Part shown: positions 6,001 to 35,544 of the stretch, in pieces
Layout of the letters: every line of letters starts with the position of its first letter
Position numbering within the stretch: position 1 is the first letter of the stretch
From: Klebsormidium nitens
Taxonomy: Eukaryota; Plantae; Klebsormidiophyceae
Direction of reading: 5' to 3'
Length of the DNA stretch: 64,000 bases
Assembly (NCBI GenBank): GCA_000708835.1
Contig: DF236955.1
Location: 372,001 to 436,000, forward strand
Translations under genes and position numbers: made by a program
The notes under the pieces: model-generated
What the model was told of the DNA's origin: nothing
The model's database searches: none
What the model saw: the letters and a program-made list of their open reading frames with translations, nothing else

Positions 6001-6156
6001 GTGGTCTTTCGGCGGTGCTTTGACAGCGTTTCTCGGACCATTTCTCCGGTGCTGACATTCGATGACCGTGCAGGCAATGGCCCCAGCGGTTGGGACATCC
6101 CCAGCTCTTGGGCTTCTATATATGGGCCACCACCGGACACGTCGCTCTTTGGCTGA
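3046..6156 (+). CDS. PSMG2: Proteasome assembly chaperone 2 (PAC2)
   Basis: Exons 3046-3105, 3745-3910, 4376-4875, 5595-5718, 6074-6156 total 933 nt in frame. Motifs PAISIGNVGQLAIDL, VVVLSGLDAG, LLCSEGDNVPDG and C-terminal WDIPSSWASIYGPPPDTSLFG. Intron 3 needs a GC donor. Confidence 0.93.
4091..4130 (+). repeat. Intronic tandem repeat (CTTCTGCCAT)x4
   Basis: Four exact 10-bp copies in PAC2 intron 2. Confidence 0.95.
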
Positions 6157-7282
6157 GCTTCCGCTTCGTGCTAGTGAGCAGGAAAAATTCCGTGGATTCA
6201 AATCTGCGATTCTGATGGCGAAGGTCGATGCAGGTGGGGTGAGCATAAGTGAAAAACACGTCGACAAATCTGGAGCTGCGCTCAACAGATTGCTGACACA
6301 GAACATATATCCGACGTGCGTGACACTGTTTGACAATTGCACACGTTCGTTGAGTGACCGAGCCTGGATGCATGTATCAGTACTAGTTCAATCACCACCT
6401 CAGGCGCACATCCTTAGCTTTCACATGACGGCATAGGTCATAGCGTTTATCTCCTGGCATGGCTTCAATACCGTGCAACCATGCCCTTATCGCTGCGCTC
6501 TTGAGTCTAGCGAGCCTGGTGGTCGGAAATTTCCTGGTCAGAGTCCGCGGTTGAACGCCGGCGCAGGCAGCCCAGCCGCCTCCAGATTTTACATGGTGTC
6601 CCTGTTGTATGCAATTGATCCTCGATCATTCAGCGTTACCGTCAGATATTTTAACAATATATGTGCGCGCATACATATGCAGCAGAATTCACTTGATGTC
6701 TATTGCCTTTGGCGAGCATGCTCAGGCCTGCGGCAACCATGCATGTAGCCCACCGTCGAGGCGGCAATTATGTATGTGAACGCATGGCACACATTGTAAC
6801 AGCGGCGCGCAAAGTGCCTAGAAGGGTAGCCACGAGCAGCTTCCTGCCATGGTCTGACCATTCATAGCGGAAAGCTCATGCAGTTGAGCAAGCAGCTAGA
6901 CGAAACGTACTGCTTCGAGTCGCGTTGCCAAAGACGAGGATTGAGATACAACTACGGATGAAGGGCTTCCAACGTGTCAGTAAAAAGTACACGGCCTAGT
7001 CCCAAATGCATTCTCGCTCAGGTGTGTTGAAGATATCCTTTCTCTACGACTACGAGCAGGCCGCTTGCCCTAGCCTACTTTCGCCAGATCATCCTATGTA
7101 CATCCCAAGTACAGCCGACCTCAGGGCCGCCTGAACGAAAAGCTTTGCAAGCACTGTTACACAATGAGTGTTCCCTGTAGATATCTGCAGATCTACATCA
7201 CGGGCCTGCTTGCCCTTCTTTTCTCACTCTCAAGCAACTAGTAGTAGTATCGCCTGACGACCTAAGACCATCACAATTGCCA

Positions 7283-10005: not shown

Positions 10006-12242
10006 GAGTGGTAGAATCAAAGAATCTAAATACTTGAGGCGCTTCGAAAAGTAACGGTTCTGCTGACCTCAATCAGTGGGTGTATGGAAGAGGAGTCCAT
10101 GTTCTCCTTCCCTGCGTTCTGTCTGCACTCGCAAGCCGTCTCCTCAGCTGATCAGACGTTCTGGAGGTTAAGAGGTTAGACCCTCACCAACCCCAGTCGA
10201 GAAAGGTCAAACAGACATCTAACCCCGGCACCAGCTTGGAACCTCCGTCCGCCCCTGCTAGAGGAGAAGGCCGGTGAAGATGTTCTACGTACTGAGAAAT
10301 GGTACCCGGTACCCCCGGTCCTTGACGGTCTGCGTAACGCACCTCTAACTACTTTCTGATAACCTGGTCCAGACCCTGATCCGCGAACTTGAGGGAACCC
10401 CCTGGCCCTGGGGTTCGAGAGTCTCAGACTGGTGGACTGTACAGAATCCTGCAGGAGTTCGACGTTTCATCTCCAGAGCAGCTGGTTTGACGTTCGAATG
10501 CTCTATGAACCTTGAAACTGAGCATTATGAACACGACTGAGGGCGGCTTTGTTGGTAGATCAATTCGTCCAGCTACAGATCATAAGGTCCATCCGTTGAA
10601 ATTTAGCAATCTCAATAGAAGGCAGATCATTGCAGGGACAATCAGATCTGCGCTAATTTTGATGCCAAACGATTCAGCTGACGTCACGTACAAGCCTGGG
10701 CGCCGGCTTGTAAGTTGCACCAGAGTTGTTCCTGATCAGGCGCTGCGCCGCGGGCGGCCTGCACTACCGCATTGCAGCGCCCACGTGGCCGCCTGCATTA
10801 GTGTTGCAGCCTTCAGAATACCTAACCGATGCACGTAATATAACGAATTCACAGAAGATACCACACGATGTAAAACGATATCAGAAGCGGGAGCAGTTAC
10901 CCCGACTGCCCAAGAGCCGCAATTAGTCTCGCCTTTGATGCCTTTCAAATATGCACACTCTTCCTTACACTTCGCTGAAGGGAACCTCCAAACCTCAAAC
11001 GCCGCCCTCCGCTAATATTTGATCTAATAGGTTGCAGTGGCCCGGCTTGGCATTCAACAAGTTGAAAGAAACCAGGATAGGACCAGATGGACATCGCAGA
11101 AGTTACCTTTGTCATGACGGATGGTAAAGAAGGCGACTGATGAATGGGTTACTCACTGCTGATTTGCGCAATTTCCCGGCTCTTTGGAGGATGACGTCTC
11201 CGACGGCCTTTCAATGATGAGGATGTTCTCGTGAATGCTAATTCGTAATCCATCTCGTACAACGACTTTGAGAAAGACGACTTGAAAGTCTCTGAAGACG
11301 ATGATGATGATTTGGAGGGGGACAACCCATGGGCTCTTGAGCAATTAGTTTATGAGCGCATAATGTTACCTATGAGGGTGTGGATTAGTCTGAAGAATCA
11401 AGAGAGTGACATCCCAAGCTCGTGGGCTTCAAATTGAATACGACAGAGGTTTGTGTTTGAAACAGTGGTACATCCGGAGTTATGATGATCGAGGATGTTC
11501 GAAACGTGGTTCAAGGGCAAGGGACTCAAGGATACATGGCATCCACGATAAAGTCCATCGGATCCAGATAAGCGTCCTGGGAGCAGGGAACTTTGTGCTT
11601 TAGTAGCGAAGCTTATCAATAGCACGCTTGAGAGAAAGTTCTGATTCTGACCAGTAAGCGAGTTAATTTCGAAGACTGATCTCACGAAAATTCCCCTCTC
11701 TGCCCACACTGGCCCGGTGTTTATCTGATTGTCAGAGCTTGTCAGATTTTCACGCAACGTTAATTAGGGAGGCACAAGAACAGGCGTGTTTTAACTTCCA
11801 CAACGGCTCACGGAGTCTACTTTATGAGTTGAGCGTCTTTATTGCGTGATGACATTGCCTGTAGGCGCGAGAGGAAGCAATGAGAACACGTGATCAATAA
11901 TCACGCAGCGGCTGCAGCTCCACCTCTCATGATGCGCCGCAAAGCGGTTTCCCTCCCCAGACAACAATGTACCATACTCGAGTCACAACAATCAACTTCC
12001 AACATGCACAGGTGAGACATACAAATGAGGCCGCCGCCCAGATCGCTCTAAGTGGAAACGAACATGAAGACGAGATGTTCATCTCAAACCCGGCTGAGGC
12101 ATTCTCAACCGGCAGGTACGACCTTAAAAGCGTTTTGATTAAGGATGAAAGCGATTCTCGTATGGTCTCAAAGACCGTTTCAATGAGGGAATGAAAAACT
12201 CTTCGAGTGTGCGAGTTATGGATATGCCTGAACTTCTACTAG

Positions 12243-14039
12243 CTACGTTAATCCCAGTAGCTTGTACGCTGATTTGGCAGTATAGGTAATCGTTTCCGTT
12301 CCAATTGTAGCTTGCAGTACTTTGATAGTGATGGTGCTGGTCATTGTGAGGAGGGTGCGAAGGCCGAACCGCCCGTAGGCAATCAGGTTCAGGACGGGGA
12401 TGTTGACGAGGATGGGATCGAGGGTGTGGCAGTCTTGTTGAAAGGCAATGCGCTTTCGCCGAGTTCCGCCTGCAGCTGTGCCATTGCGCTACAAGGAAAA
12501 GGAATTAGCGGAGACACCTTAATCTCTGGGTTCTTGCGGGCAGAATAAACCTGACACGAGCTTTCAGTCGAAAAGCAGATATCACCAGAAATCGAATGAG
12601 AGTTGTGCTGTGGTCAAGGCACCTAATCCAATGCTCTGGCTTGCTTCGGTTTTCTAAGGAACACCTCTATCAAATTTGTAGTTTTAGCTACTGAGATTGT
12701 CGACTGACTTGTTCTCATATCGTAATTCGAAATCAACGCATGGAGCCTCCGCTTCAAGAACACCGTATAACGTAGGAAGTTCAGCTTCCTCCAACTCAGG
12801 AGACCTACTACCTTCACGAAATCAGAGGCTCAGAACGAGACTGACAGCTTTCAACGAGCCCACTTGTGTGCACTGCCAGCTGGCAGGCGTCCACATAAGG
12901 AGTCTTCGTCAGAAGCCTGCAATTTCGACCACAAACTTGCTACGGATGGCAAGGAAAGCCCGCAGACTAGACGAACTTACGTGCTCCCGCCCTGTGCTGC
13001 TGGGTGCATCCTCCAGCTTGAAGAAGACCATCATGGGCATTCCTTTCTCCTCAAAGGGGTTCCACCACTTGCGGACGTACTGTGTCATGCGCACCATTAT
13101 GTACTCCTCGTCCTCTTTGTACGCCACTTGGTGGATTGTGGCGCGGAGGCTGTGGTTGGACATTACCCAGATCTGAGGCGAAGACATGGTTCAATCTGAG
13201 TCGGTGCGTCAAGCTGGTGTGAGATTCATCTCGCAGGAAGAAAACCAGTTGTGGAAAAAGGATTGATAGCAGTCTGCATACGACGAACGATGGACAAGCA
13301 ACCAGCGCAGCACTTCATGTTAACTTTGGTGGTCTCCAGCGTTTTAGAGACCGTTGAGAATCTAACCTAGCACTGACGGCACTGAGAAAGCTGTCAATGG
13401 TGACCAGGAGAAGATGTGCACTCATGGGCAGCTTCTGTCACACCTTGGTCATCTATGGACCTCAGAAAATCCAGAAACGAAGTCAGAAAATTTGTTTCAG
13501 GTAAAGTGGCTTGAACGTTGAACAGTTTCTGGGATAACTGCCTACAAGCTGCGACCTGTGACAATCAAGGCAACAGTAACCTTGTTTGGACCACCCAAGG
13601 AAGCTTACGGAACATAGCATAACATTCTTTGGAAGCAGAGGCCTTCCAAAGAAAAAGAACAAGATAGTCTGTGGAAACCTTTCCAGAGTCTGACCTAAAA
13701 GGGATCTAAAGGTTGACTCGCAATCGCATAAGCTATCTTGACAGTATCTGCATTCATAAGCTCTTCAGAGCTTCAGCTGAGCAAAAGTTGTGCTACCGTT
13801 CAATGGAAAAAGAAGAGAAATGCTATGCATGCAGACTGTAAGAGGAATCACGCGTGACCTGGCAAACATACCTGGTATGCTGCTAGAATCTCTTCACGAT
13901 TTTTGCAAAAGACGACCATATGATCCAAGATAGCGGACTCTGAAAAGTATTTAGAAACTGTCTCTTCCTGCCGCTTCAGGTCCTCATTCTGCACAATGGC
14001 CTGGATGATGCCCGGTATCTCCTTGGCCGGGTCCTCCAT
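12243..14039 (-). CDS. NTF2/SnoaL-like fold protein resembling a fungal family (SigF-like NTF2), predicted hydrophobic C-terminus
   Basis: Exons 14039-13872, 13172-12981, 12488-12243 total 606 nt in frame (201 aa): MEDPAKEIPGIIQAIVQNEDLKRQEETVSKYFSESAILDH...REEILAAYQ|IWVMSNHSLRATIHQVAY...YIMVRMTQYVRKWWNPF...|...KRIAFQQDCHTLDPILVNIPVL. An acceptor at 14070-14071 suggests a further upstream exon. Confidence 0.75.
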
Positions 14040-14738
14040 GGTGGTATTTTCTTCTTCTGTAGCTTCCACCTAACAGCTGACAAATAACCCCTCAAATCAC
14101 GCGAGGAGCACCCGCTTTGCTTGACTCCCCGATGTCAGAGTGCTTTTAGGGTTTCTATCTGTTGCAAGATGTTGAATTGTGTCGCCCCTGCTTGCAAAGG
14201 ACAAACTTCAAAAGGTGCTTCCAGGTTCTTCTGACTTGAACATGGGCCGCTTGCAGTGTGCAGTCTTGCCTAACGGGTTTGAAGCTTTGAGCCTAGAGGG
14301 AGCCCCCAAGCGCACCCCCGAGGACTTCAGTGGTCAGCACGTGGCTGCTTCCTATTGATTGTTTTAGATCGTCAGATCTTATCGTGAGGAGATCTATCCG
14401 TCGATGATAACATTTGCAGATTCACCGACCGAACGCCACAGAGAGCCGTGCGCGGTCATGAAATGCGCTTCTCGAGATAATGGGGGGATGATGGTTAAAG
14501 CATGGTGGCTGCCTGCAACAGGAACGCGTATCCTGTTTGCGATTGCAGCCAGAGGCCGCGAGGATCTGCATGCATCGAGATCTGGCCCGGCTCTGCATGC
14601 AAACAGACCACCGAGGGAAACCATTCAGCTAGCATAGGCATTGCGGGGAAGAACACACAGCAACCAATCGTTTTGCTTCGACTCAGCTGTGAACAGCTCG
14701 GTTGTCTCGTTTGTCGTCTGCTCTAGCTGCACAATCTT

Positions 14739-16612
14739 ATGTTTGGAAGCCGCCTCTCGAAGTTGCTTGGGCCTGCAATTTGTTCCTCTAGTCAACCACC
14801 CCAGCTCCGGTCGGTGTTGCAACAATCAATCTTCAGGACAATGGCGTCTTCACCAGCTCTTGCCTACATCATTGTCTACGTGGAAGATGTTGAGAAGTCC
14901 ATTGCCTTCTACGAGAAGGCCTTTGGGCTGAAGACCAGGATGGCCACTGGGGAGAAGAGGACTGCCTGGGCTGAGATGGAGACTGGCTCCACAACACTGG
15001 CTTTCACCCCAAAAGCGCAGGTAAATAAGAGCAGGCCTCCTTGATGCCATGGACTGACAGCATTGCGGATGCTTTGTTGCACCAAGCAACTTTTTTGACT
15101 CCCTATTCTCAAGCAGTCGCCAGACTGTGCGTCAAAGGAAGTTTCAATTGTGTGAAAGTGGCTGGGTGGAGACTTGGGCATGTGGGCATGATCACGATGT
15201 TTGCATCTTTCTCATATGAATGTTCACTACGTTAAAAAGATACACAGATCTGTTCAGGCAATCCTTCGCCTAGAGTTTGAGCTACACAGGTCTGGTGGTG
15301 GAGCAAGCTCAGCTTCCAACACCTAGTACTGAGGTTTTTGGTTGTCAGACTCTGCTCAACATATTTCTGGCAATCTGAAGTATTGCCAGTACTCAGCTGC
15401 CTGGATGTTTGGTACCTGCTGGGCAACCCAGACGAACTTATCAGTGATGATGAGCAGCTACAGCTCAGTCAATTCTATGTAGTGGTTTGGTCATCCAAGA
15501 CAACACCTTGTTGCGAAAGGATGACAAAGACATTCCTAGCGGGCAACCACTTGTCCAAAAGAAGCATCTCGGAAGAGAGGGTTTGATTTAGGCCCACCAT
15601 TAGTAGCTCAACCTTTTCTAGGTGGTCGAAGCCATTCTCTGAAGGGGACAACCAAACAGCCTGAACATAGTGGCTTTTCTTTTCTTGCGAAGCTGAGAGT
15701 TGAAACGAAATTCCACTTTGCCTTGTTTGTGCGCTTGTGTCCAGAGTAGCTGTGAGCCAAGTTCTTCCAAATAGATCTTGATGGTAACAGCCCGTTGGGT
15801 AGTTACGCTGCCTGCGCAAGACCCTGGATTACGTGGATACAATGAAAGGGTTTGTGAGCCATACCTGTTGAGTGTGGCGTCTTGGTTGTACTGCTGATCT
15901 TACTGCTGCAACCATCTTCCTGCAGCGGGAGACTGCTCTTTCCGGCGGTGTCAAATCACACGACGACAGTGAGGCTGCCCCCAACGTGTTGGTCAGCTTC
16001 ACGTACGATGACGTGAACAGTGCGTACAAGCACGCCATCGACTCTGGCGCAAAGCCGTGCGCAGAGCCCGAGCCCAAACCGTGGGGCATGACTGCCGGGT
16101 GAGCCCATTGAAGAGACACGCCCTTCGTTCTGGGATTTACATCGTCCGTTCAATTGTCGCCATTTGCCCTTCGAATCAAGGCAACGCCATCTCGTTTGCA
16201 AAATTGAAAACCAACTTCAACGAAGCCAACTTCGTAGGAGCTCAGTCAGTGTTGGACGCGCTCCCCGTTTCTCAGAAGAGCTAAGGTTTGAGAGGACGCA
16301 GATGGGTAACAAGCAGACAAGCTCATCGAGCAGGTTCCATTGAAACTTAATTCACTGTCAACCCGTTGTGCTCGTCCGTCCTGTTCAGTCTCGATACTCG
16401 TACGGTTTCGATACTTCGTGTGAGACCGAGATCTCTGCGGATCCTGTCTCTGTATGCACATATCCGTGTGCTTCATCTTGGTATTGATTGATCATCAGCA
16501 CAGCCTTCTTTGCGACTTCCGCTGAAGTGTAACTTCGTATCATTGCAGGTACGTCAAGGACATTGACGGGATCCTCGTACAGATTGGTAGCCGCGTGAAG
16601 AAGCAGCAGTAA
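14739..16612 (+). CDS. VOC-family glyoxalase/bleomycin-resistance protein with probable organellar presequence
   Basis: Exons 14739-15020, 15926-16098, 16549-16612 total 519 nt in frame. Motifs LAYIIVYVEDVEKSIAFYEKAFG, WAEMETGSTTLAF, DVNSAYKHAIDSGA, PEPKPWGMTAGYVKDIDGILVQIGS. Confidence 0.92.
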
Positions 16613-17963
16613 GCAACCGACTGCGTTGTTGGCGCTTAGAGAGAGTTACGAAGTTCCGAGCGTTAGCGATTTGTAACATAAATGAGTAGTGTGTACCAAA
16701 TATTTGATCACGTCCTATTTTTGCCTTGGTTTGATAGCTCTGAGAGTCGATATTGAACCTCGGAACCCTCGTTATGTGGAGGACATATAGAGATCATGGA
16801 AGCTGGCCCACGAGTTTCGCACATACGGAATATCCTTTCGGGCAAACGTCAGTGACTCAAATGGATTAAACCTTCCATGTATACTTTGGGAAAAATTGCA
16901 CAGTATTTGCGACCCCGCTTCAGCATTCTGGTGCGCAACTGTAATGTCTTTGCTTAGTACGGTTCAAAGCTGTTATGTGTCAAAGTTCAAGCCGTTTGGA
17001 GCGATCCCTTTATGTACTGACTGCATGCTTAAATATGGCACGCGCTCGACGTCTGCATTGGCGTAACATCTCGGGCCCATATTAAAACGACGGAAGAACA
17101 TGTGAGAGCTCAAGTAGCCGGTGTGCTTGCTATGTGCTATACAGATTTGTCTCCTGTTATTCATTCCTTTCCATTAATGTTCTTGTGTGAAGTATGTCAC
17201 GAGATCCTCGCTGAATTTGAGCGATCTTCGAATCATCTTCGAGGCCATGAGTGACCAACGAAATAGGAAAAGGAGGTATGCCAATCAACGTGCACCAGCC
17301 GAGAATTTCCTTGATCTACAACCTTCCTGCCAAGGTTCGAAAGTCAGGGGCAATGAGAGCAAACAGATTAATTGCAAACATGGCCAGCTTATCTGGTGCC
17401 CGCCACTGCCGCCACACATGATTGGCGGTCGCCACATGCAGATCACATCGACTTGAAAGTGCCCCGGCGGCCCTGCCCGGAACACTGCTGATAAGCTGGC
17501 GCGTACTGACGTCACCTTGCATGCATGGTGCATGCTTGGTTTTCACACTCTAACCTTTCCTGAGCCGCGGTCCGGTTTGATTTTTCTGCATGCAGGTTCT
17601 CGGGATTACTACTGACAATCAGGGAAGAAGACGGAGGGGGCAGATTGCATGCACTCATGCAGGTCTGACTCTGGGCCCCTCATGCATGCATGATTGACTT
17701 GAATTCAGAGACAGTTCGCGAAGAAGCTGAAGCGAGGAAAGGCCGGCTCTTGCTTCGTAGGACAAACATCCCAGCTCGACTCCCTGGAAGCCAAGCACAG
17801 AGACTCTCTCCATACTTGGCGATCCTGTTTGTTCGATTGGGGCGGAGGAATTGTTGGATGCAATTAGGGCGAGCTTGGAGATTGCGCAATCTGAAAGTAG
17901 CTTTCAAGCTTTCCTCAGGAGAAGTTCCTTCTACTTGTAAAGGCTTCCTTAAGCAGGTTCAGA

Positions 17964-20771: not shown

Positions 20772-23763
20772 GCTTGGAACACTGAGATTGTAGATGAGGG
20801 TCATCGATAACCAAGTATCTGGCCGTTCAAACCCGCTCGTTCCCGCATTGTACATTGAAGGGCGATGCGGCAGTGCAAGCGAGCGAGTGTACAGGGTAAT
20901 CAGTTTTGGTAGGCTATAAGTCAAATGGTTGTCATGTTACAAGTATCTGAATAGCAGACAGCTAAGCTCTGGAAACAGGAGCAACACGGTCAGACAAGCA
21001 GGCTTACGAGCAGTCAGCGAGAATCTAAACGGTTCTTCTTTGATTGAGTGATTCGTTCACCAATGTCATCGTATCAGGTGTTTCTAAACGTCCGGTCACG
21101 TGTAGCTGCTTGAAGGACGAGTCCGGATTGGTCTTTGTCATTGCCTTGAAGTTTTATTGGACGACTTCAGTGCATTGGGTAGGCTACATTGGTTTTGGGG
21201 CAGTCACGAATGCAAGATTGCACGTTGAACTGTCCGAGATCTCACAACGGCGTTGTCGAGTGCATCGTTTGAGCAACTTCGTTCCCGGACGTTTCCAGTC
21301 CTTGACTGTTATGCCATATATACGCTGTCTGATAGAGGCGAAAAATTCCTAGATTCAGAACCAAGGAAGACTGGTTCTCATTGAGATGATTGGCTTGATG
21401 ACAACCATGTGGCCGACATCTTAACCACTTTCTTCCAACAGTGTGCAAGTCTCTAAGCCACTCCCGTCTTGGTCGTATCAGAACTCATGGGGCACTGGAT
21501 TCGGATCTTCGTTATGTTGCTACACTAGACGTCATCAATTCTCAAGAGTCGATGAAAATGTCCCGCATGGCCGTACAACTCGTCCTTCATATCATTGTGT
21601 TTTAACTGGGGAAACACATTTTCGTATCTAATCAGTCCACGTCGCGGGGTCGGATGATGCATGACGCGGGACAAGCTTTCATATCAATCGGCCGATTGAC
21701 ACTCGGAGTTCGAATCCTCTCAGTCTTACTACAAGGTACGCTAGCCCCTTCAGAGACCATCTGTGCTACGTTGGCACCGCCTACTCGAAGTCCATCATCT
21801 CCGCATCTTCTGCTGAATGTTTGCCTGCGCTGAGCACGTCCGGCCAACGTCTAATCTCTATCTGCTCATGTCTCTTGACGCGTGCTACTCTGTTTCAAGG
21901 CCGATCATGACAGCATTGTCATCGGTGTTCAGAGCTCACACTTAAAAGGTTCTCGGGATAGCAGGACAAGCTACTGACGGTAGGTCGAGAAATGGAAGTA
22001 CTGCATTCGATCGGGATGCCGTTAATTGTCCAACCGGTAGAGCACTGAGTAGCTGTGAACTTCTTAGAGTAAGCCCGGCGCGACCCCGCCGCATGACGGT
22101 GCCACTGCTTCACAAGGAAAAACCGTATCCTGAGTGGTAGTCCTATGTCGGCCGAGCTACCTCGGATTATCAGTCTCGTCTTGCAGCCAGTCGCATCCAA
22201 AGCAGACGTTCCCGCTCAGTCTTGTCATCCTACGATTTAATGAGTTTCGAAACAACCGCCTGAGATACTAGTCTGCTAGCTAATCTCCAAGACAACACAG
22301 GCACTCCCTCGGCGTCCAAGCTAGCATGGGTACACCAGTGGCCAAGCCTTCAAGTTCAAGCGTAGAGCACACCAGTGCTGAGGCGTAGGTGCACATCTCC
22401 TGTGCCATTGGGCTAGCTGAGATAGAGTGTCAAAGGTTGCCTTAGGTAGGATAGCTAGATAAATAGTATCTCAGTACCATTGTTCGAACTCGGTCGGATC
22501 GTGTGTTGACACTCTTCGGCCCCATGGCGCAAGCTACGGTCCTTATAATTGGCTTGCCCTTTCAAGGGGAACCCATAGGGTTCCATCACGAACGAAACAT
22601 CTGCTAGCAGGTGAACCATTTTTCAGACCGTAATTCCTAGACTGGCCGTTGGCTTAGCCAAAATTCGATTCGGAGGGTTTAGTGCCATCTGTCTTGGCCG
22701 GACATTGCTAATTGTCGTTCACGCATGGCGCGCCATGCATGACACTAATTTTCAATATCAGAAAGAAGCGCCTGACGCTCCGCACTTTGCGGGCCGAGGT
22801 CCGCAATTATCGGTACAGTCATGGCCCGTCGGTCTGTAACGACGTGCTTGGCTGGGATCGACCTGCTACGCCAGCTGGTATGTTTGGGTTACTTGTCGGG
22901 TTAAGCGTCGATATGTACGAGGTTAATCGGATGCGGGGTTAGGATTCGTAACCAGTTTATGAATGATGCCAGGGAATGTCACCGACAGTGTGTGCCGTCG
23001 CATGCATGCATGTGGCCTGCCGCCTGACCAACTGACGATGAAAATTGGATTGCGCGCTGCGCTTTCCTGCCCTTTCCCTTTGCCCCGCCGTGACGCTAAA
23101 TTCAAAGTCAACTCGTGCAAACGGCACCTGATCGACGGCAAGCCACAGTCCCCCGCAGGGGGACTGATCGGGTCACAGCTTGTTGAAGTATGAATGAATT
23201 GCAAACCCCGAAGCTTTTGCCAGTGCGCATCTGCGCAAGGACCAGCGCAGTCACCGTCTTTGCTGGCGTGCGGTTGATGGGACCTTCGGCCGAGAATCAC
23301 GCTCAGTCGTCGGATTGACTTCCAGAAAGTTCGCAAGGGCTATGGGTCACTTTTGCGACGTCCGATAAGATCACATGGTTCCACATGGTCATAGCCACAT
23401 GCCGGCCGGCAGGTGTGCATTGTGGATAAGCTCTAGCTAGCTCCACATTTGGAGTTTGGAATGCTGTCAATTCCAGCAGCAGGGTCGGAAACCCACTTCA
23501 ATGGTACCTACTCGTTCATAGAAGAAACATTGCAGGACGGTGTAGAGAGTCCGCTATGCTCTGCTTGTGACAAAACACAGCTCATGTTGACACCTGATGA
23601 ATGGTGGTAATTTCAGAAGATACAACAATCACTCTAGTGAGCTTTTTTAAACGCAGAATGCCGAATGTATTGGCTCTAGCATTGTGAAGTAGGTGCATAC
23701 TCCCGCACCCATGGGCGCACAGCCGGGCATTGAATACCCCCACCACCGGAACTGAAATGGACA

Positions 23764-26700
23764 ATGGCTGCCTCTAGTGGCAATCCCGACAAAATGGCGC
23801 AAGGGCCGCAGAGTGCCGCAATGCCAGCTGGCGAAGAGCCAAAAGCGGCCCCCCAGAAGCGGGACCTCATGCTCGAGATTTGGACGCTGGTTGCGATCGG
23901 CGTGCTGGTCCATGGGGACTGCGGTTCCTACCGGGGTGTGCACTTTGCGGTGCACTTGCAAGGCCTGCAGCACAAGAAGCGAATCTTAGCGTTGAACCCG
24001 ACTAAGGAGGGCTTTCCTGAGGAGAAGGTGAAAACGCTCATGAGCGAGCCTTTCAAGCTTTTCTATGAGGGGCCGGAGGGGGAAAGTGAAGGGAGCCGGA
24101 AACTGGTGATGACGTGTCCCAGCAGCCTGAAGCTGGCGGCAGATTGGAAGGCGCGTGGGTTTGTTGGAGTGCCGAAGACGGGCGCGAACGATGCCTTTGG
24201 AAGCCCCATCTTCTTCTTTCACACTCTGAATGTAAGCGGTTATCTTACTCTTCTTTTTGGCTTTCCTTGGGAAATGCTATGCCAGGGGTTGAAAAGCTTT
24301 TCTCCCGTCTGTGGCATCGCAAGACTGGCAACAATAATTGAGGTAAAGTTGTCTAAGGCGGCACAATTGTTGGCAATTGCAGCTCACAGGGCTTGATCAC
24401 GATTTGCATTGACTTTCACCAGAATACGATGGCAGGTGTACTTTTGTGCACCTCTTCCCAGGGCAGTCGTTGGCACTGATAAATTCAGTTGAATCATTTG
24501 CTCTGCATTGGGCAATTGTTGCTTAGTAGGTTGTCCCCATTACTCCTCATGTATGGGAAAGTTGCGGGGGTTTGCAGGTTGAGTTAAGAGCTTGGAAAGG
24601 TGCATGGTACCAAAAGTATCCCGCCAATTGAAGCAAGCTTACAGAGTACAGCACGCACATGCTCAGCATGACTATCTGTGGTGTGGGTAAAACTGCTTTA
24701 CCTGTGGGTAAACCCGCTTTACCACTACTTCCTCAATCTGATGACGTGTTATTTTCTTCAACTGGCTTGCATCACCAGTTCCTGGTCTGTACTATTTCCC
24801 CCCTTCCAATAAACATGTCTAGGTGACACTGTCCCTCTGCTCGTTTCGCAGGGCAAGCCAAACCGCAACGGGCCTTTAGTCTTGGGCTCGATACGCGACG
24901 CCGTGACCGAGAAGATCCGCTGGAACCCCGAGACTGGCTCCTCAATTCACGGGACACTCGAGCAGCTTAACCAGAAGTTTGAGGAAGCGGTGGTCCGGTT
25001 GCCTAGGGCATCCAAGAAAGAGGGTGCCAAGCCACAGGTGTGGGTGCAGAGGACCGGGCAGAAAAGGGGGGGGAGTGCGGTGAACAAGCTGAAGAGAAAG
25101 TGGGCAGGCGAATTGGGGGGCTTGAAGAAACGGGTCTGGGAGGGGGGGAGTGCGCTGAGGCGGGACCTGAAGAGAAAGAGGGGCCAAGGGGATGCATTGG
25201 AAGGAAGAAGCAAGGTTATGCAGGGGGCGAACGACAAAGTGTTAGGAAGCAGTCAGGGGAGGAAGATGGGGCAGACGCAACCGAACACTACAGGAGGAGG
25301 GGCGGGCCTGAGCAAGGGCCCAGTCGCGTCGAAAAAAGAAGGGACTGAGAGCACAACAAAATTGCAGCATGGATTGAAAGCCTCCAGTGCGAAAGCTGAG
25401 GGCTTGAAACACGAGAAGAAAGTGGTGGGCAGTGCGCCGGAAGTTGGAAGGGAGCCTCAGGAGCGCTGTGGTCTGGAGGGCAACGCAGGGGGTGGGCCTG
25501 TGGACGAAGAGAAAGAGCGTTCAGCGATTGGCAGCTTGAAGCAGGCTTCAGAGAAGCAGAAGCAGGAGGGAAAGGACTCCGAGAGTGAAGAGGACGATGG
25601 TGGAAATGATGGATCAGAGGTGCAAAAAAGCGGAGTACAGGGTGACAACGCTGGGGTCAAAGATACTCATGGTGGGGGCACCGGTGGGCCTAGCCAGGCT
25701 AACAGGGAGCGCGTAAACAATGGCCAGGCCATTCAGGCGGAGGTGGGCAGCGGAAAGCAAGCTGGCGATCGGGGAATTGGATTGACTGCGGTTGGGGGCG
25801 AGAGAGAGCGGGCAAAGCCTGCGATGCTGGTGAAAGGGCCAGGGCTGAGGCTTCGGATATCTCTGAAAGATCTGCCAGGGCCGGTGGCGAAGGTGCCGCG
25901 TCACTCAGGGTCGGTTGCACCGCAGGGGCAGAAGCCTGCGGGTTTGGAGGGGACAACGGAACAGTTTGGAAGCGGTGTTGTTGGGGCGAAATTGAAGTCG
26001 GAGGGGGAGAAAGATGAGGTGGTGGAATGCAGAGGAAGGTTGCCTGGCACAGCGGCAGAGCGAGGCAGCGGGGGGGTTGGGGAGAGCTCGGTCAGGGGGG
26101 ATGGAAGCCCAGTGGAACCTTCAGAGGCGATCAAGGGACAAGCCGAGGCAAAACGGAGGCCAGCAACCGAGAAAGGCCACAGGGCGGAAGGCGGGACGAA
26201 CGGGGAGAGATCAGTTCTCAGCAGCGAAGCCTTAGGAACGAGCAGATCCGACATTGTGTCGGCGCGGGAAGGGTCCGAGCCCGATGAGATCGGGCAGCCT
26301 CAAACTCCGGATAGTCACACAGCTGAAGCGAGGAAAGCAAGAGAAAAGGATCGCAGGGCTGCCTTCCCATTAGAGCCGCTCGAAGATGCGGAGGCTGTCC
26401 GAGAGCTGGTGCGCAAGTCCGCTCGGACAAAGCTGTTTGAGATGCAGCTGGTCACGGGAAGGTACCGCGACGTCGAGCGCGCTTTGCTGGAGTTGCTGAA
26501 AGCGCCGGACTGCCGCCCCGAGTTCAAAGTGGAGCTCAAGCTAGCGCTGCGGCAGATGCGCGAGGGGGACCTCCTGGCCCCTCCTCGCTGGGAGCGACTC
26601 GAAGAAGCGGCGGAGAAAGAGTGCCCAAAAGGCTTTGAGGAGATGCGGGCGGAGCGAAGTCGCAGCGGGGGGGCAGGTAGTCTGCAACTCGGTAGCATCT

Positions 26701-29700
26701 TTGCTGACGGGGCTCGTGACGTCATTGCTGGCGTTACCGTGCTGGGCCCAGCAGAGAAGATGCGGACGTGGCGGGAGGCGAGGGTTCGGAAGATGACGTC
26801 AGCACGCGTGGCGCCCGTTTTCGTGCCCAGCAGGGGGCGGGCTGACCTTGCGTACCTCAACTTTGAGGCGGAGTGCGCTTTGGGACCAAGGAGGGTAGGG
26901 GAGACGCCGGTGGTGGTGTTCGTGAGGGGCGACGAATTAGAAGCGTACCGTGCGCGGTGGCCGGAGCTGCTGTTTGCCATTCTGCCAAGGTGGGCTGACC
27001 AATCTAGTTTGTGATTGTTGGATGTCGATAGAAGCATGAACGGATGAAACTCAGCAGAGTGAAGTGTGGGGTGGAACGACTTGCTGAATATGTCGGCTGT
27101 CGGGTCCAGTCCCTTACACTGAGATCGGCTCTGATTGGTTTTGCGAGTTCCAACCCGTTGCTTTCCCGGACCTACATGCAAAAGTCCTTCATCGTGTCAA
27201 CTTTATGCTTCGCTTTCAAGACAGAATGAGTGACTTCAGATTAGCAGACTTTGCGCTTCAGTCCAACGATGAAGCGTTACTAGGTATCCACCATTGGATG
27301 ATAATCAGTTCCACCGACTCGCGATTAGACGCTGTTCGACGTCAAACGATTGCTGGGTTCTCTTTCGTACGAGCACTTTGCAGCATTGGCGCGCCTCTCG
27401 TCTGAGATCCAATCAAGCAGCCGCTGATTGGAGCAGCTGCATTTCTACAGCTCCGCAAAACCAACGACGCGTTTCCTTTGGCCCCAACTCTCACTTCCTT
27501 CGAAAGCAACTCTTTCCAACTAACTACCTCAAACACCACTTTCCTGCAGCGGGCAAGGTTGTAGCAGCATCGGCGGAGTCCGCAACACGATGAAGCGCTT
27601 TGCCGCAGCGGCGGGCCTCTCGCACTACTGGGAGATCGACGACAACGTGATGGGCTTCGTGGCCGGCCCGGAGAGGCGCCACGTGGCAATGTGGGAGGCG
27701 CTGTTATATGGGCAGCGGCAGATGCTGGAGTGTGCGGGGGAACGGGTCGGGGTGTTCGGCTTCGAGTGCTGGAAAGGACTGGACGACATTCCAGAGGACG
27801 GGGACCTGTTTCTGAAAGCGAACTCAGCGTCCATCTACAAGGTGAGGTGCAATGGAATAGTCGTTACCAGGAATAGTTTTGTGGGTGCGTTTCGAGATGT
27901 AGTACCTCGGTCGTGCCCCTACTGTGTGGATTCTAAACATTGCTCTCAGCGGATAGCGTCTGGCCATACGAAGCAGATTATGCTGTGATGAGCCAGCAAA
28001 ACTGTCCTCTTCGCTAGCTTGCAAACCGTCAAAGCGAAGGTGAAAAACTAGTTGCAACTTGACTTATTAGTCTCGATGCTGATAAGCTCTTCGAGAAGCA
28101 TTGGCATTGTCTATCACGGCTTTCTTGGTCGATAGTGGTAAAAATCGAATCTCATGTTGGAAGTCAGGTCTTCAGGATCAGTTGCTTCTATTTTTGTCAA
28201 TCAAGGTAGGCGATTTTGCTCGATTGGTTTATGCTCGTCTTCGTGCCTCGCTTTCCGGGCGGTCCCTGCTAAATTTGTCAGGTTCATGGCATTGTTGTTG
28301 ACGAGCAAAGCGTCAGAATCCATTGGTCGCAAAAGACTTGATCAGAAATACTTACTATCCTCAGGTGCGGTTGATTGATTGCCACGTCACCGCGGGCATG
28401 CGCTACCGCCCGTTCCTGCACAGCAAGGAGGACATCCTGTTCAACGCGGAGTTCACCTGCCGGGGCGGCCGCACCCTCAAGAGCCTCTGGTTCCGCTACG
28501 TGCGCTCGTTCTGGTCCCAGGGCGGCTGCCACGATGCCCGGAACCCTGTCCAAATTACCAGCGTATCTGGGGTAGGGGGAGCGGACAATCTGGCAAGATC
28601 GGCGGGGACAGGGGCGGGAGAAGAGGGCCTCTTGGGTGCCAACGCGTCTGGGCCTGTCGAAGGCTCAGAAAAGACGGTTTTGGAGGTGCGGTTAGACACG
28701 GCTCCGGAAAAGGCGGCAGCCGTTTCTGCACTGTTCCCGGCAGTCGGGCCGAGGCCACAGTTTCTGGGGGTCAACAGACCGGGACCGTTGAGCGGAGCGC
28801 AAGGTGGCTGGAGTATTCCCAAAGTGGACAGCGGCGTGGCGGGCTCTGATCGCCTCCACGCTTCTGCTGCGGGTTCGTTGGAGCCACGCAAACGTCTTGG
28901 ACCTCTAAACATTCCCGCATCGGTCCCAGAAACCGAGATTCCGGGTCCCCCGAGCGAGTATCAGCCAGCGGGAAGAGTTCAGAGGAAGGTCTCTGCTCGG
29001 GGCGGCGAACTTGGCTTCGGGGCGGCGTCTCCAGTAGCGACCCGGAGAACGAAATGCAGAAGCGCCTGCGATTCAGTCGAAGACGGCTCTGCAAATTTTG
29101 TGCAACCTGTCCCCGGCGCGCAAACAAGGCCGCTAGGTCCGGATCTACCTGTTCCGCCTGGCACCCCTCCACACCAAAGCTCCCCGGATACCCCCCCCCA
29201 AAGCAGTGCGCCGGAATACCCGCCTGGCTTGAGCTCGCCAGGCACCCCCCCGCGAGGTGGATCCTGCTCTAACAATCCGTCCTCCCCTCGTGAAACTGTT
29301 AGTATTCCCCCGAAATGGGGTGTGCCAAAGGCACTCGAAGAAGAAAGCGACGGAAGCGATGATTCAGCAGGAGAGTCAGAGTCAGAAGCCGAATCCGAGG
29401 CCCATTTTGGAAGCCCGCCTCGGTCTTTTCCTGCTCCTCTAAGGGAAGCGCCCGCGCCTTTGACCCCACCGCCTGTGACCCCGAGGAAACAGAAAAAGCG
29501 ACCGAGCGTAAAAGCCGAGCGATCGAGGCCGGCCTGGATGGAGCGGAGTAAAGACGATGAAGGTAAGCCGTTGATTGGAAAATTTTGTAGGCGTGAGACA
29601 GTAGAAGTAGTGGGAAACGCGATCTCATCTTGTTGACTTCGTTGAGAAGTCGGCCAGCCTGCCCGAAAGAAGTACTACGACGTCTTGGCAGGCTTTGTGC

Positions 29701-31019
29701 GCCCCTACTTTTACCATCCCTACTCCAGAGCTTTTTCTGGAATCACTCTCCTGTTGCGATTCTTGGTTTCAACTCCCGAAGCTTCTCTGCTTGTGCTGTT
29801 CCAACAGATTGTAATCGCATTTTTATTTTTCAAATTGCGTACCGATTCTGCTTGTTGTCACCGAACGTTGATTCATATGCTGCGCAATCCGGCGATTTGA
29901 TCCTTAGCCCTCGCCTTGCCCTTTTACCGTGATGTTCGATTACCGTGCTCCTTCTCAGGAGGCTCAAACCTTCACTCGTGGCAAACAAGTTGTGCTGCGA
30001 AGCGTAGCTGGTGCATCCGCTGAGTCGTTTATATCAAGTTCAGTTCTATGGGGTCGGCCAAAGGCAAATCCAAGCCGGGTCGCACTCCGTCATCGCCCTA
30101 CCAGCAGGCCTACCGCCCCACCGCTCAACGTTCCTCTGCTATGTTCGTCAGGTATCTGGTTGACGTCACTTGACTCATTGGTCTTTTGAAGTTTACTTTC
30201 CTCTTATGTTCTGTTCTGCTCAGTTTAATGTCAATGCGGCCTTATCTCTATTCCACCCGTGCAGATCTATTGGGGCCGGCCGTGGCAATGACGGGTGCAG
30301 AGCTGGCCGCGGCGCTGCAGAGTGACGTCACGCTGACGGAGGCCTACGTCAAGGAGCAGCGGGCCCTGCGGAAGCGCGGCCGGCTGGGCGGGCTGTCAGG
30401 GAAGCTGAAGGCCGCCGAGAAGCAGCGGCAACTGTTAGCGAAGCTAGATAAGCTCCTCGAGATGGGGACGTACAGCATCGTGAAACGGAAGAAAGTCAAG
30501 CGGAGAGCGGTGCAAGAGGATCACGATCTATGGGAGTGCCCGGGAGACATGTTCAGCGGACATGCGCAGGGGAAAACTAGAGCGAAGATTAAATTGGCCG
30601 AGGCGGCGGACATAACGGTTATGAAAGATGAGGAGCTGCGGGAAACGCACCGGGAGATCATGGCCGTCGCGGATAGGCTGGGGAAGAAGGGCCGCCTCCG
30701 AAAGAGCCCGTTCGGGGGGCAGGTGATCTTGCGCCTCGCGCGGCTGCTCGCGTCGCGTAATGCGCGTGTGCACCAGCAGGCCGCGCGCACGCTTTCGGAC
30801 TTGGCGGGGCGGTGTGACGTCACGGGGTGCGCGAGACGGGTTGAGGGGTTCAGGAAAGCGGCGCGAGACGCTTTGGGGTTTCTGGTCGACCACTGGGAGC
30901 TGTTTAGGGACGAGCGGTTTGGCATGCGCCTGATCGAGGTTAACAAACTGTTCCGCCTGGGCTTGATAATGTTTCGTAGGCGTGTACTGACGGGTGGATT
31001 CGATGCAAATGTAAGCTGA
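23764..31019 (+). CDS. Large multidomain protein: tentative 2OG-Fe(II) dioxygenase-like N-domain, low-complexity linker, GREB1/JGT-like (TAGT) glycosyltransferase, Pro/Ser linker, ARM-like helical tail
   Basis: Exons 23764-24231, 24852-26989, 27550-27841, 28365-29562, 30044-30151 (least certain) and 30265-31019 are all phase-consistent: 4959 nt, 1652 aa. GT-A motifs PVFVPSRGRA, ELEAYRARWPELLFAILP, IGGVRNTMKRFA, YWEIDDNV, KEDILFN, SQGG. Confidence 0.85.
24682..24723. repeat. Tandem 21-bp unit, each copy a GGTAAA-N5-TTTACC inverted repeat
   Basis: TGTGGGTAAAACTGCTTTACC followed by TGTGGGTAAACCCGCTTTACC, in intron 1 of the glycosyltransferase gene. Confidence 0.85.
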
Positions 31020-33066
31020 AAGGGCCTCATGCTTCAGTTTGTACTAGGCCAATCGTGGCACACCTGCGCATGTCTGGATCTGAGAGTCTAGCAGTGGATG
31101 CGCATTTGAAGCTCAGCATAGTATACAAGCCCGCTTTCAGACAAGGCTGATTGAAGTTCCTACGAACTGGTTGAACACAGCCGAGGATGGATGCAATCTA
31201 CAAGGGTCGGATGTGACCGTGCATGCAATGTAAATCGGATCTATTACATATCAACGTGACTGCATGCACTATAGTGATTAGTACTCAATGTTCAACATGT
31301 GCCGATTCAATGTCCTGAAACAATTACTCAGTGTACATGTGCACTCGATCAATCTTCAGGTGCAGCTAGCTCTGGTGTTCTAGTACGCCGTGCAGCTGCA
31401 TGTATAATATGTTGCACATGCACCCCTTCAGCGCTCTCGTGCACGATCCTCTCGACTGATGCCCAGATTGTCCACGTATGTTCAAGATGGTTGAGTGCAC
31501 CGTGCAAATCAGATTGTGCCCAGTGCGACAACAGCATGGCAGCAGAGCTGTTGAATTCGTCTTAAGCTGCTCACAAGCATGCCAGCCTGACTCACTCACG
31601 CATGTGATCGTGGTCACTTGGCAGTCGGAACACTCCGCAATTGGATGTATCTTTTGTTAAGCAACCTGAATTGTACTCTCAGAATCTGAAGAACTAGCTC
31701 TACGAACGCGTGAAGACAAGCTCCAGTTCATCTTTTTATAGGGCTTTTCGTATGTATATCAAATGACGGCCATTTGGGCATTCACGTTTGGAGAAGCGTC
31801 ACCCCTACCGACACCTGCCGAAAGACAACACAAACCCCTGGGCACAACTTGCAATTAAGCGCGACTCTATGGGCGGACTAAAGTCGATCCCTGTAGGAGA
31901 CTACGCTGTGCAGCTCACACGCGTATCATAGTCGAGGATGAGGCCGCTATTCTAGATGACTATGGGGTGTGACCGTAACTCGCCTCGACAACACCAAGCA
32001 AAGCATCGATGTCCCTTGGCCCTGTGTAATTGAGTATGGGCTTCGTCCCTTGGAAGAGGACGAGCGACGGGAAGCCTTTCAGGTTCAGATCCATCACCGG
32101 TTCCGAGTATACATCGGCGTTGAGCCGTGCCACCTGTCCACCAGCAGAAACGAATAGCTTGTCAACATAGAAAGCCGATAAAGATCACGGACCGTCGCAT
32201 CTGCACTCACTCCTCAATTGCACATGCCTTAAGATACTTTCGACACCAACCCTGCATATATCCTCCGTCCTGTTGTGTTATGAATTCTTTGAAAATCTGG
32301 CGACTAGGCCCCTTGCACACGGCTTTTAACCTGGATTGCTAAAATGGAAGTGGACTCAGGTATCGAAGCGGCATACCTGTACATTCAAGCCCTTCTCAGA
32401 TATGCGCTTCGCGAGCTCCTCCCAGGTTGGGGCCATGCGTTTGCAGTACGGGCACCAATCCGTGTAGAACTTGACGATTGTGGGCCTGCACGGAGAAAAC
32501 ATTTGTCGAGCACAAACTTTGCTCGAGGGGCGGAATACTAGATACCCCGGTTTGATCCCGAAACCTCGAACAGATAACTATGAAAGATTCCTCCCCAGAA
32601 TAGAGTCGGCCGGGGCTGAGATCCGCACCCGTTCTTTGATGAACGCGAAAGCGAGAGAACGTCACGTACAAAGTAGGAGTCTGATTTCGAGGAGGACTTT
32701 CTGCGACGAGCCACCAAGGCGAGAACCTCAGACGCGGAGCGGATTGACTTACCTGGTTGTCAACACGGGAACAAAGTTGTCGACGTTCAGGTCTACGACC
32801 GTGCCCTGCATTTCCCGTCTGCGTAGACACAAGGCGATCAATAACGAGCTGCAAAGTAGACACGTGATCAGGAGAACAAAGCCGAACATGATCTGTGAGG
32901 TTACTCATAGATGCTAAAACTGCCCGTTTTCACACCTGCTCGTCCGTTTCTGTGTTACCGTTCAGAAACGAAGATGCTGTAATCATAACGAGCCTTCATT
33001 CCTCGGTCGAGACAATTAAAAAAGCACAAGTGATTGCAGGAGAGGCCGTTGAAGGTGAGAAAGGAC

Positions 33067-35544
33067 TCACAACTGCTCTTCTGCCGCCAGCCGCATGGCC
33101 ACAATCCGCACCTCCTGCTGGTGCCGATATGCCCGGCGCACCAAGCCCCCCGCAGCGGCTACGGCCACCGCAAACACGACCGCTCCGACTACCAACTGCG
33201 CCTCGCGGGGGCCTTTCTGCATCATTGGAAGCGCCCTCCCCTGCAAGCTCCGGGCTGTCTCGGACAAGCTGCCCAATACCTCACCCCCGCCTCGCTGCAC
33301 CTTCCGGAGCGTTTCTAGGGCGTGCAGTCCGAGGGTTTTGAAGGGGTTTCGCGGCGCTCCTTGGGCATTTGCCACCTGGCTACGCAGCTCGGAGAGCCTC
33401 CGCGTGAGGCTCTCCTCGGCTGCGAGCAGTGGGGGCTGCTCAGTTGTCCGCAGCTGAGCATCGGATGAGGGGGAGTGTGGTTGGGGGGCCAGGAGCGGAA
33501 AGGCTGCGGGGGTGGCTTGAGGGACAGGCAGGAAACGGGCGGTATGGGGATTGTTTGGTACTTGAGGTTCTGTGTGGTTGAGCTGTTGGATGGACGTTGA
33601 GGCGGAGGACCAGGCAGACCCGGCCAGCATCTGTGAGGACGGCGGGAAGTATGAGAGGAATGAAAAGTATGAAGGCTCCTTCAGGAGGGGCTTCGAAGGA
33701 GGCAAGATGGGACGCTCTAAGTTGAAGGGAAAGACAGGATGAATGTTTTTTTGTGGTTCCTTTGTGGCAGTAACGGAACTTGTCGGCGTTAATGAGAACC
33801 AATTAATGGACAGTTCGCCCCGTATTTGTCAAAGCCAAGTTCACTTGATTAAAGACTTGGAAGTAGATCATATTGAAGCTTGGAGACCTCAACATAGAAC
33901 TTGCACAAGAGTTCGAGAGAACGGGGCATAGAAAAGCAGGCACCCTTCCTTTGCACAATCGCCATGTCAACCAACAGGGGCACCTTCATCCTCTCATTCA
34001 GGTGTTTGCTGAGGGGATCCAAACAAGCGAACACGAAGGTGCAAAACTCAGGATATGAAGCATTTGCCTACCCGGGCTGGCTGCCACCAAGCCCTTTCCT
34101 CCCCTTCTGCCTCCTCCCCTTGCCACGGCCCGGCTGTCTGGGTGGTCGTGAGCGCTTCTTGCTGGAGATCTCGCAGCAGGGCCTCTAGATTGGCCACCTC
34201 GCGGCTCATCTTTTCCAGTTTGGCCTGCTCGCAGACATGAGGCAAGTGAGAACGACTGACTGCCTGTTCACGGAGGTTCTGTGCAAAACTGCCGGACTGA
34301 GTCATCTGGTACAACCAGCCACGTACCTCAGCAACCTACAGGGGTGACGAAGCTTGTTGCTGAGACACTTTTCACGATGGAAGAGCTTTCACGATGTCTT
34401 CCCCCTCAGAGGGAAAGAAATTTCTCCCCATAAAATGAGAACTATCAAGGCTGCCTACTTTACCTAGATCGGGACTCAGTTTCAGCAGTTGTATGGGGCG
34501 CCAGCAAAATGAGAAAGAAGGGAACACCATGAAAAGATGGTCACCTCCATCTCCGCCTTCTCAAGTGCCCAGGAAGCATTATTTGCAGAACTCTCAGCTT
34601 GGATCTCCTGCAGATGCACCTGCAGGTACCGTAAAAAAGGTCGATGCAGCACCAAGGAACCAATCTATAAAGTCCAGGTCTGCCAGGAAGCTGCAGAGAG
34701 AAGCCTTTGCGTGGGACTTTCTTGCAGAGAGAAGGCTTTGAATTGGAGATCCTAATAGAGTGGAGCGTGCGACGACTAAACTAGAACCAGAATTAAACAC
34801 ATGCTATCAGTCTGCTCTCGGATACGATAACAGGCCGTCTGTACCAGATTGCAATGAGGAAACCAAAACAAGCTGGAAAGCTGCCGTACATAGGGTGATT
34901 ACCTCAAAAGACTTGCTGCCTTTTGTTGCATGACCAGCTGACCCTTGTGCCAGTCCCAGCAGTGCGGGCCACGTGCCATTGTGAAACACTTGTGCAGCAT
35001 CCGAGTGCCTAACCTCTGCCTTGACAGCCTTCTCGTGAGACTCAAGAACTTGCAGGACTGTTTCAAACTGCTTGAAGTGGGTGGCTGCCTCAACGGCAAC
35101 TGCGCCTTTCATAGATTGTTTGTTTGATAAGGGGCTGTCCCTTGATGTTTTTGGCCTGGTAAACTGGCCCTCGTTTGACTGTGATGCTGCCGTCAGGTTT
35201 TCAGAGGCTGTTGTGGCCCTTGCTTCAGCTGAGGTCCTTTCTGCGTGCACCTTCACATCATGTTGCCAGCTGTCTGTAAGAACATACGTCACAGGATGTC
35301 CATTGCGCAGGAACGCCCGATTTTCTGCCAATTGATCAACTCCTATATTAAGCTGCGTTTTACCAGCCCTGGGTCTGAGAAAGGGACCCCCATGATGGCC
35401 TTTCTGACCTCCCTGACTGCTGGCTTCATCGTTCAAGGCGTGGCACGAGAGGTCTGTTTTCTCCAGGTGACCTCTGTGGATCCCGTTCTGTTCGACAATT
35501 GAAGGGGAGGAAGTAGCACTTGCCCTGATTGCAATCTGGGCCAT
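33067..35544 (-). CDS. Hypothetical multi-exon protein with coiled-coil segments and a C-terminal transmembrane helix
   Basis: Exon 1 is 35544-34903 (donor GAG|GTAATC). Internal exon encodes EQAKLEKMSREVANLEALLRDLQQE. Late exon about 33630-33071 ends LVVGAVVFAVAVAAAGGLVRRAYRH. Middle exon structure is uncertain and no family was recognised. Confidence 0.6.

Follow-up and report, generated by a model that had tools for sequence, protein, structure and literature searches.

The TAGT (TET-associated glycosyltransferase) family is known from enzymes that act on the hydroxymethylpyrimidines of DNA in phages and in kinetoplastids (PMC8256090, PMC11065753). Its phage members are small single-domain proteins, encoded beside C5-methyltransferase and TET genes (PMC8256090). 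The kinetoplastid member is JGT, the enzyme of base J, which works with JBP1/2, the makers of 5-hydroxymethyluracil. In animals, GREB1 combines an N-terminal Zn-binding domain, a circularly permuted helicase-like domain of superfamily 2 and a C-terminal TAGT domain, and the sites that have been mutated in it are R1553, H1609, D1645, D1646, R1737 and D1742 (PMC7968844).

Here we describe a gene of the streptophyte alga Klebsormidium nitens, found in a window of 64,000 nt of contig DF236955.1 (the whole stretch of DNA that was analysed, to whose positions all coordinates refer), whose central domain points to this same family. The best explanation, and one we consider rather probable, is that it encodes a one-step glycosyltransferase of GT-A type, a basic and probably nuclear protein of 1616 amino acids (aa) in which the TAGT domain is accompanied by accessory, lineage-specific domains. 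TAGT is the only catalytic module that can be recognised in it. The enzyme family as such had been described before. The novelty lies in the architecture, in an N-terminal domain (N-domain) restricted to the lineage and in the occurrence, in a streptophyte alga, of a TAGT gene whose motifs are intact; we found no description of such a gene in the literature searched. For the present it counts as a known enzyme family in a new architecture, and not as a new kind of system.

An expressed gene of five exons

The preliminary description of this stretch had read here an open reading frame (ORF) of six exons and 1652 aa, with a globular N-terminal domain, a central GT-A domain, three basic clusters resembling nuclear localisation signals (NLS) and a helical tail, and had taken the whole for a candidate one-gene machine that would perform both oxidation and glycosylation. 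The six segments, re-derived from the sequence (23764-24231, 24852-26989, 27550-27841, 28365-29562, 30044-30151 and 30265-31019), form a frame of 4959 bases with a single terminal stop, and all five introns have GT..AG ends. RNA contigs of runs X1, X2, X9 and X13, from four studies, were placed on positions 24160-30159, and in all four the joints 24231>24852, 26989>27550 and 27841>28365 are seen (the second appears in the output as 26987>27548 and was shifted by +2). Beyond the donor at 29562 the RNA of the four runs reads ATCTATTGGGGCCGG..., a loose contig end that is the sequence from 30265 on, and this continuation (ATCTATTGGGGCCGGCCGTGGCAATGAC) matches the genome at 30265. Because the RNA of exon 4 runs straight into 30265, the segment 30044-30151 is skipped and thus intronic. 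Read depth in X1 is 343 in exons and 0-24 in introns, and about 6 over this segment, which, alone among the proposed exons, also has no block of conservation in the locus of the ortholog presented below. With exon 4 joined to 30265, the gene therefore has five exons and a product of 1616 aa instead of 1652. It is a real gene, and it is expressed: exons 1 to 4 and the last exon of the earlier reading stand, its fifth exon does not, and the N-domain and the glycosyltransferase domain do share a single transcript, as had been supposed, through joints found in four runs. Features of the locus are collected in Table 1.

The RNA contigs extend 490-700 bases upstream of 24160 and, provided that they follow the genome colinearly, span the whole of exon 1 and a 5' untranslated region; an in-frame stop lies upstream of the ATG, at 23731-23733. 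Two exon-junction patterns retrieved no spliced transcripts from the metagenomes of JGI.

Table 1. Features of the locus and the observations on which each of them rests.
Feature	Positions in the window	Strand	Support
Exon 1 (aa 1-156), with the start codon and the greater part of the N-domain	23764..24231	+	joint 24231>24852 in 4 runs; coding conservation in L001 ends just past FFFHTLN
N-terminal conserved domain, aa 32-205	23857-24231 + 24852-24998 (span 23857..24998, intron 1 between)	+	homologs P0002-P0005, P0008, P0009, P0011, P0012
Conserved element within intron 1, starting at a donor-like GAG/GTAAAG (GAG|GTAAAG)	24340..24433	+	blastn block against L001 reaches 24433
Exon 2 (aa 157-868 + 2 bases), coding for the last part of the N-domain, the basic segment, linker 1 (disordered), the helical segment and the first quarter of TAGT	24852..26989	+	both joints in 4 runs
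Conserved basic segment, aa 206-270, with KLKRKW, KKRVW and RRDLKRKRG; NLS-like	24999..25193	+	well kept in L001, in contrast to the remainder of linker 1
Conserved helical segment before the glycosyltransferase domain, aa 656-809	26349..26810	+	45% identical in L002; dN/dS 0.29 (aa 656-790)
TAGT domain, aa ~810-1022, three pieces	26811-26989, 27550-27841, 28365-28532 (span 26811..28532)	+	PF20691, Atlas, invariant motifs, dN/dS 0.10
Exon 3 (aa 869-966): core of TAGT, containing IGGVRN and HYWEIDDN	27550..27841	+	joints in 4 runs; D899-D900-N901 at 27638-27646
Exon 4 (aa 967-1365 + 1 base): end of TAGT (VRLIDCHVT...SKEDILFNAEF), Pro/Ser-rich linker 2	28365..29562	+	joint 27841>28365; donor 29562
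Previously proposed exon 5, part of intron 4	30044..30151	+	no joint uses it; low depth; no block in L001
Last exon (aa 1366-1616 + stop): basic, all-helical C-terminal domain	30265..31019	+	loose RNA end at 29562 matches 30265

Relatives of the gene and selection on its parts

A search with the product of exon 2 gave one close relative, P0001, 75% identical over the part searched. It is encoded on a Logan contig of 21.6 kb (L001), which shares synteny with about 14.7-35.8 kb of the window, and it is the ortholog from a sister species; the conserved blocks of L001 coincide with the five real exons, and the modules follow one another there as in the window. We rejected the idea that the gene is recent transposon cargo, given that the synteny spans 14.7-35.8 kb of the window. 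A more distant contig from a JGI metagenome (L002) carries two copies of the gene in head-to-head arrangement, one on the minus strand (1410-8432) and one on the plus strand (10031-17908). The plus copy has the N-domain, the end of exon 2, the TAGT exons and the C-terminal domain (C-domain) in the order of the window, the linkers lying outside the comparison. In the minus copy, exon 2 is interrupted by in-frame stops and H153 is replaced by N; judging from these changes, it is probably a pseudogene. Further paralogs were found in the sister species (L004) and in the JGI sample (L005).

The ratio of nonsynonymous to synonymous substitution rates (dN/dS) between the window and L001 is 0.10 in the TAGT domain, 0.14 in the N-domain, 0.29 in the helical segment (aa 656-790) and 0.24 in the C-domain, against 0.6-0.75 in the linkers; amino acid identity reaches 95% in exon 3, 89% in the N-domain and 84% in the last exon. 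By this measure, four modules (N-domain, helical segment, TAGT and C-domain) are under strong purifying selection between disordered linkers that evolve fast. The first 31 codons (23764-23856) behave as neutral in the same comparison, with a dN/dS of about 1.0 and 50% identity. The functional start may be a later methionine (M11 or M20), or the first 31 residues may be a free tail.

A TAGT domain with intact motifs

The central domain is split by two introns, and its pieces were scored for family membership separately and not as a joined domain. The end of exon 2 matches positions 2-55 of the 205 of the Pfam family PF20691 (TAGT), the sole family found, in four genes (E-values of 1.6e-4, with 22.1 bits, in the window; 5.8e-4 in L001; 1.6e-6 in the plus copy and 9e-4 in the minus copy of L002); the plus copy of L002 scores 28.6 bits, over the curated cut-off of 27.5, on a quarter of the model. 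For exon 3 the best named matches in the Atlas are TAGT clusters (0.94, 187 shared features), and 35 of its 100 matches fall in the TAGT set, while the first 72 aa of exon 4 reach 0.97, with 218 shared features, again to TAGT clusters. Exon 3 also has a weak match to phrog_842, annotated as 'beta-glucosyl-HMC-alpha-glucosyltransferase' (HMC, hydroxymethylcytosine), with E 0.06 and 0.14 in two orthologs. Sequence searches of the PDB with the glycosyltransferase pieces gave no match, and neither tblastn nor pattern scans found phage or viral relatives of exons 3 and 4. The assignment of the central domain to the TAGT family (JGT/GREB1-C type), to which each of the exon pieces points alone, is well supported by these profile and cluster matches.

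In the window, L001 and both copies of L002, the aligned spliced domains share the invariant motifs VPSRGRAD, TPVVVFVR, AILP, IGxVR..RFA, HYWEIDD(N/S) and SKEDILFNAEF. The order of these motifs fits a GT-A enzyme, whose acidic motif, DxD-like and placed after the fourth strand, would serve for the metal and the nucleotide-sugar. dN/dS falls to 0.06-0.09 over exon 3 and the start of exon 4. Pfam, the Atlas, the intact and invariant acidic motif and the dN/dS of 0.10 bear out the central GT-A domain of the preliminary description, and that it is likely an active one is well supported as far as its sequence can tell. It could alternatively be the core of a pseudoenzyme or scaffold, in which the fold is retained for binding, for example of a sugar nucleotide or a modified base, with no catalysis; a review mentions that the JGT homologs of metazoans have been predicted to lack activity (PMC11065753). 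However, all the positions expected of a GT-A site motif are invariant in four genes, and dN/dS is 0.06-0.10 there, which makes a loss of catalysis very unlikely in our view.

Compared with JGT, the algal protein belongs to the same family (PF20691) by the piecewise Pfam and Atlas evidence, and the two are alike in being eukaryotic proteins of nuclear type whose oxygenase step, if there is any in the alga, resides on a separate protein. However, no TET/JBP partner is known for the algal protein, which is about three times the length of JGT and whose N-domain, helical segment and basic C-domain match no Pfam family. On this piecewise evidence the likeness to JGT is one of family, which is not enough to call the protein an ortholog of JGT. 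With GREB1 and GREB1L it shares the build of a large multidomain eukaryotic protein, in which a TAGT domain stands beside long non-catalytic regions, and these proteins provide the family precedent for protein substrates. Yet none of the exon products of the algal gene contains a GREB1-type domain according to Pfam, and TAGT is central here and C-terminal in GREB1: the algal protein is not a GREB1 ortholog. Phage TAGTs are the top Atlas matches of exons 3 and 4, and the weak PHROG match is to a phage enzyme as well, but the algal gene is split by introns, lies in conserved synteny and has no methyltransferase or TET neighbours among the few ORFs scanned.

The N-terminal domain and the question of an oxygenase

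The N-terminal domain announced in the preliminary description is present and conserved, as the alignment of its homologs makes clear. An exhaustive HMMER search with exon 1 returned six genuine homologs, all of them exon-sized and ending at the same FHTL|GT junction (P0006, P0007 and P0010 were discarded as repetitive false hits); a profile search with the N-domain returned five short exon products, and a search with exon 3 two exon products. Among 1.8 billion representative proteins the domain was not found beyond related algal sequences. It accompanies TAGT in every locus long enough to tell, that is, in L001 and in both copies of L002, the other paralog contigs ending earlier, and it defines, in these loci, a new and selectively constrained domain that goes with TAGT in this lineage. 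A paralog lineage formed by P0005 and P0004 sits on L004 and L003. In these two proteins the N-domain is preceded by GIVS(E/R)(S/R)FIE(E/N), twice in P0005 (residues ~13-60) and once in P0004 (~5-18); the motif is missing in the protein of the window.

Should this domain be a divergent oxygenase, dependent on Fe(II) and 2-oxoglutarate (2OG) or using ascorbate, a single protein would carry out oxidation and glycosylation. Both domains are indeed on one transcript, their fusion is kept in the relatives, and H50-x-D52, H153 and R171 are present, their spacing being one that would not look absurd in that superfamily. A lead, and only that, comes from a viral Atlas cluster (698 aa, 93% Tet_JBP) of which a part has the fold of a TAGT-like fragment. 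This cluster surfaced in the Atlas structure table for window positions 28365-28580, and fusions of oxygenase and glycosyltransferase may exist in phages.

The searches gave no support for an oxygenase. Pfam gave no family at E<=10 for any of the eight N-domain homologs, Tet_JBP and the 2OG oxygenases included; Pfam-A contains PF12851 (Tet_JBP) and presumably also holds the 2OG-FeII_Oxy models. A profile search of the PDB with the N-domain gave a single match, to a methyltransferase-like protein, at E 1.1, and in the Atlas there was no informative neighbour (best score 0.77). The proposed H-x-D...H triad is variable, each of its residues being replaced in some homolog: H50 by Q in P0005, D52 by S in P0003 and P0008, and H153 by N in P0012, the minus copy of L002. 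The last replacement weighs less because this copy may be a pseudogene. The P0004/P0005 lineage, on the other hand, is under purifying selection (dN/dS 0.19), and H50 can therefore be lost from a gene that is still constrained. The residues that are invariant in the domain, T117, W128 and K129 among them, lie outside the triad. An AlphaFold2 (AF2) model of exon 1 from eight sequences has a predicted local distance difference test score (pLDDT) of 44 and a predicted template modelling score (pTM) of 0.25, and shows about 5-6 strands with low confidence; some 175 aa with about 5-6 strands is small for a TET/JBP core. The sole likeness to TET/JBP proteins, including CMD1 of Chlamydomonas, is the H-x-D, followed further on by a His, that most homologs of the N-domain possess. 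CMD1 itself retains HxD and is a recognisable TET homolog (PMC11065753), whereas the algal domain has no profile match, a variable triad and a small size. An oxygenase in this position is thus unsupported rather than disproved, and we consider it extremely unlikely; the two-step, one-gene machine finds no support for its oxidising half while its glycosyltransferase half holds, and we give it hardly any credence as a whole.

Basic regions and the acceptor of the sugar

The three basic NLS-like clusters are where they had been reported, at aa 259-266, 1340-1345 and 1439-1446. The first one and the tail cluster are nearly retained in L001, and the tail cluster is lost in L002. Linker 1 is rich in Gly, Glu and Lys, with a net charge of +16, and linker 2 is rich in Pro and Ser; both are near-neutral in their evolution. 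In L001, exon 4 switches frame within the Pro-rich linker (L001:14120-14219), where tblastn gives two overlapping pieces, one in frame 3 and the other in frame 2; an additional short intron, a genuine indel or a fault in the assembly could each account for the switch. The helical segment that precedes TAGT yields no Pfam family except TAGT at its very end. As for the helical tail, it is borne out by an AF2 model of the C-domain (last exon), which is made of helices throughout, albeit with a pLDDT of 52; the domain has a net charge of +20, and a Foldseek search of the PDB with the model gave nothing below E 0.77, with generic helical repeats only. With such clusters the protein is probably nuclear.

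In the mechanism that we propose, the TAGT core would bind a UDP-hexose and a divalent metal through its acidic motif and would pass the sugar on to a hydroxyl group of a polymer in the nucleus. The N-domain and the very basic, helical C-domain would recognise or tether the target and would not be catalytic, and any hydroxymethyl base would come from a separate protein. The data lean slightly toward an association with nucleic acids, through the basic domains, the NLS-like clusters and nearest pieces of phage type, this phage bias of the matches being one that may be an effect of fragment length. We tentatively propose a 5-hydroxymethylpyrimidine in DNA as the acceptor, as for JGT, a choice slightly favoured over protein and still short of an even chance.

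A serine or threonine of a protein, as in GREB1, is a possible acceptor, if a somewhat unlikely one. The enzyme would then attach an O-linked sugar to such residues in a single protein or in a small number of proteins, nuclear or cytoplasmic, and its N- and C-domains would recruit the substrate. GREB1 is the precedent for such an activity, since it is a large multidomain TAGT protein of animals that modifies the oestrogen receptor alpha (ER-alpha) with O-linked N-acetylglucosamine (PMC7968844). It would also agree with the fact that no oxygenase partner was seen, either by Pfam in the N-domain or among six neighbouring ORFs. However, Pfam shows nothing but TAGT and no GREB1-specific domain; the nearest pieces are phage TAGT clusters and the PHROG of a phage HMC glucosyltransferase (maybe an effect of fragment length); and the very basic domains suit the binding of nucleic acids at least equally. 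A protein glycosyltransferase of the GREB1 kind is accordingly a reading that we hold to be somewhat unlikely.

Several points weigh against our own explanation, that of a one-step, probably nuclear TAGT enzyme with DNA as its tentative acceptor. Membership in the family rests on three separate pieces and not on the whole spliced domain, and the nuclear location would follow from the basic clusters only. H50-G-D52 is kept in most homologs of the N-domain, and R171 in every homolog that covers that stretch; with a model of pLDDT 44, the domain may have a very divergent catalytic fold. We know of no source of hydroxymethyl bases in Klebsormidium nitens and, to our knowledge, TET/JBP proteins are absent from land plants. 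Finally, GREB1, the sole animal relative tested, glycosylates a protein (PMC7968844).

A bolder version of our explanation is that the protein glycosylates hydroxymethylpyrimidines in the nuclear DNA of this streptophyte alga, and that the N-domain is a new reader of modified bases or, less likely, a new oxidising domain. We judge this quite improbable; if it were true, a base similar to base J or to glucosyl-5-hydroxymethylcytosine would exist in the plant lineage. The known targets of TAGT enzymes are DNA in phages and kinetoplastids and a protein in animals, and the gene described here poses a testable question, namely whether the plant lineage has glycosylated DNA bases or whether TAGT was turned to protein glycosylation there too.

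Neighbouring genes and a conserved element in intron 1

Upstream, the syntenic region includes an exon at 14739-15041 (+) of the glyoxalase/bleomycin-resistance type (PF00903, E 6.6e-07). This glyoxalase-like gene is the only one recognised among the six adjacent ORFs scanned, in which there was no TET/JBP oxygenase. Downstream, conserved ORFs lie on the minus strand (32396-35541), and none of them matches a Pfam family.

A search of Rfam with the locus, intron 1 included, gave no family, and intron 1 does contain a conserved element (Table 1). The 202 bases past the donor of exon 1 are 60% identical to L001, against 44-51% in other intron stretches, and the identity is found mostly, judging by eye, in the ~90 bases that follow a donor-like site. 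One RNA contig of low depth spans 24270-24469. Use of the donor-like site, at 24343, would lengthen exon 1 by 37 in-frame codons in the window, but in L001 a stop is found there.

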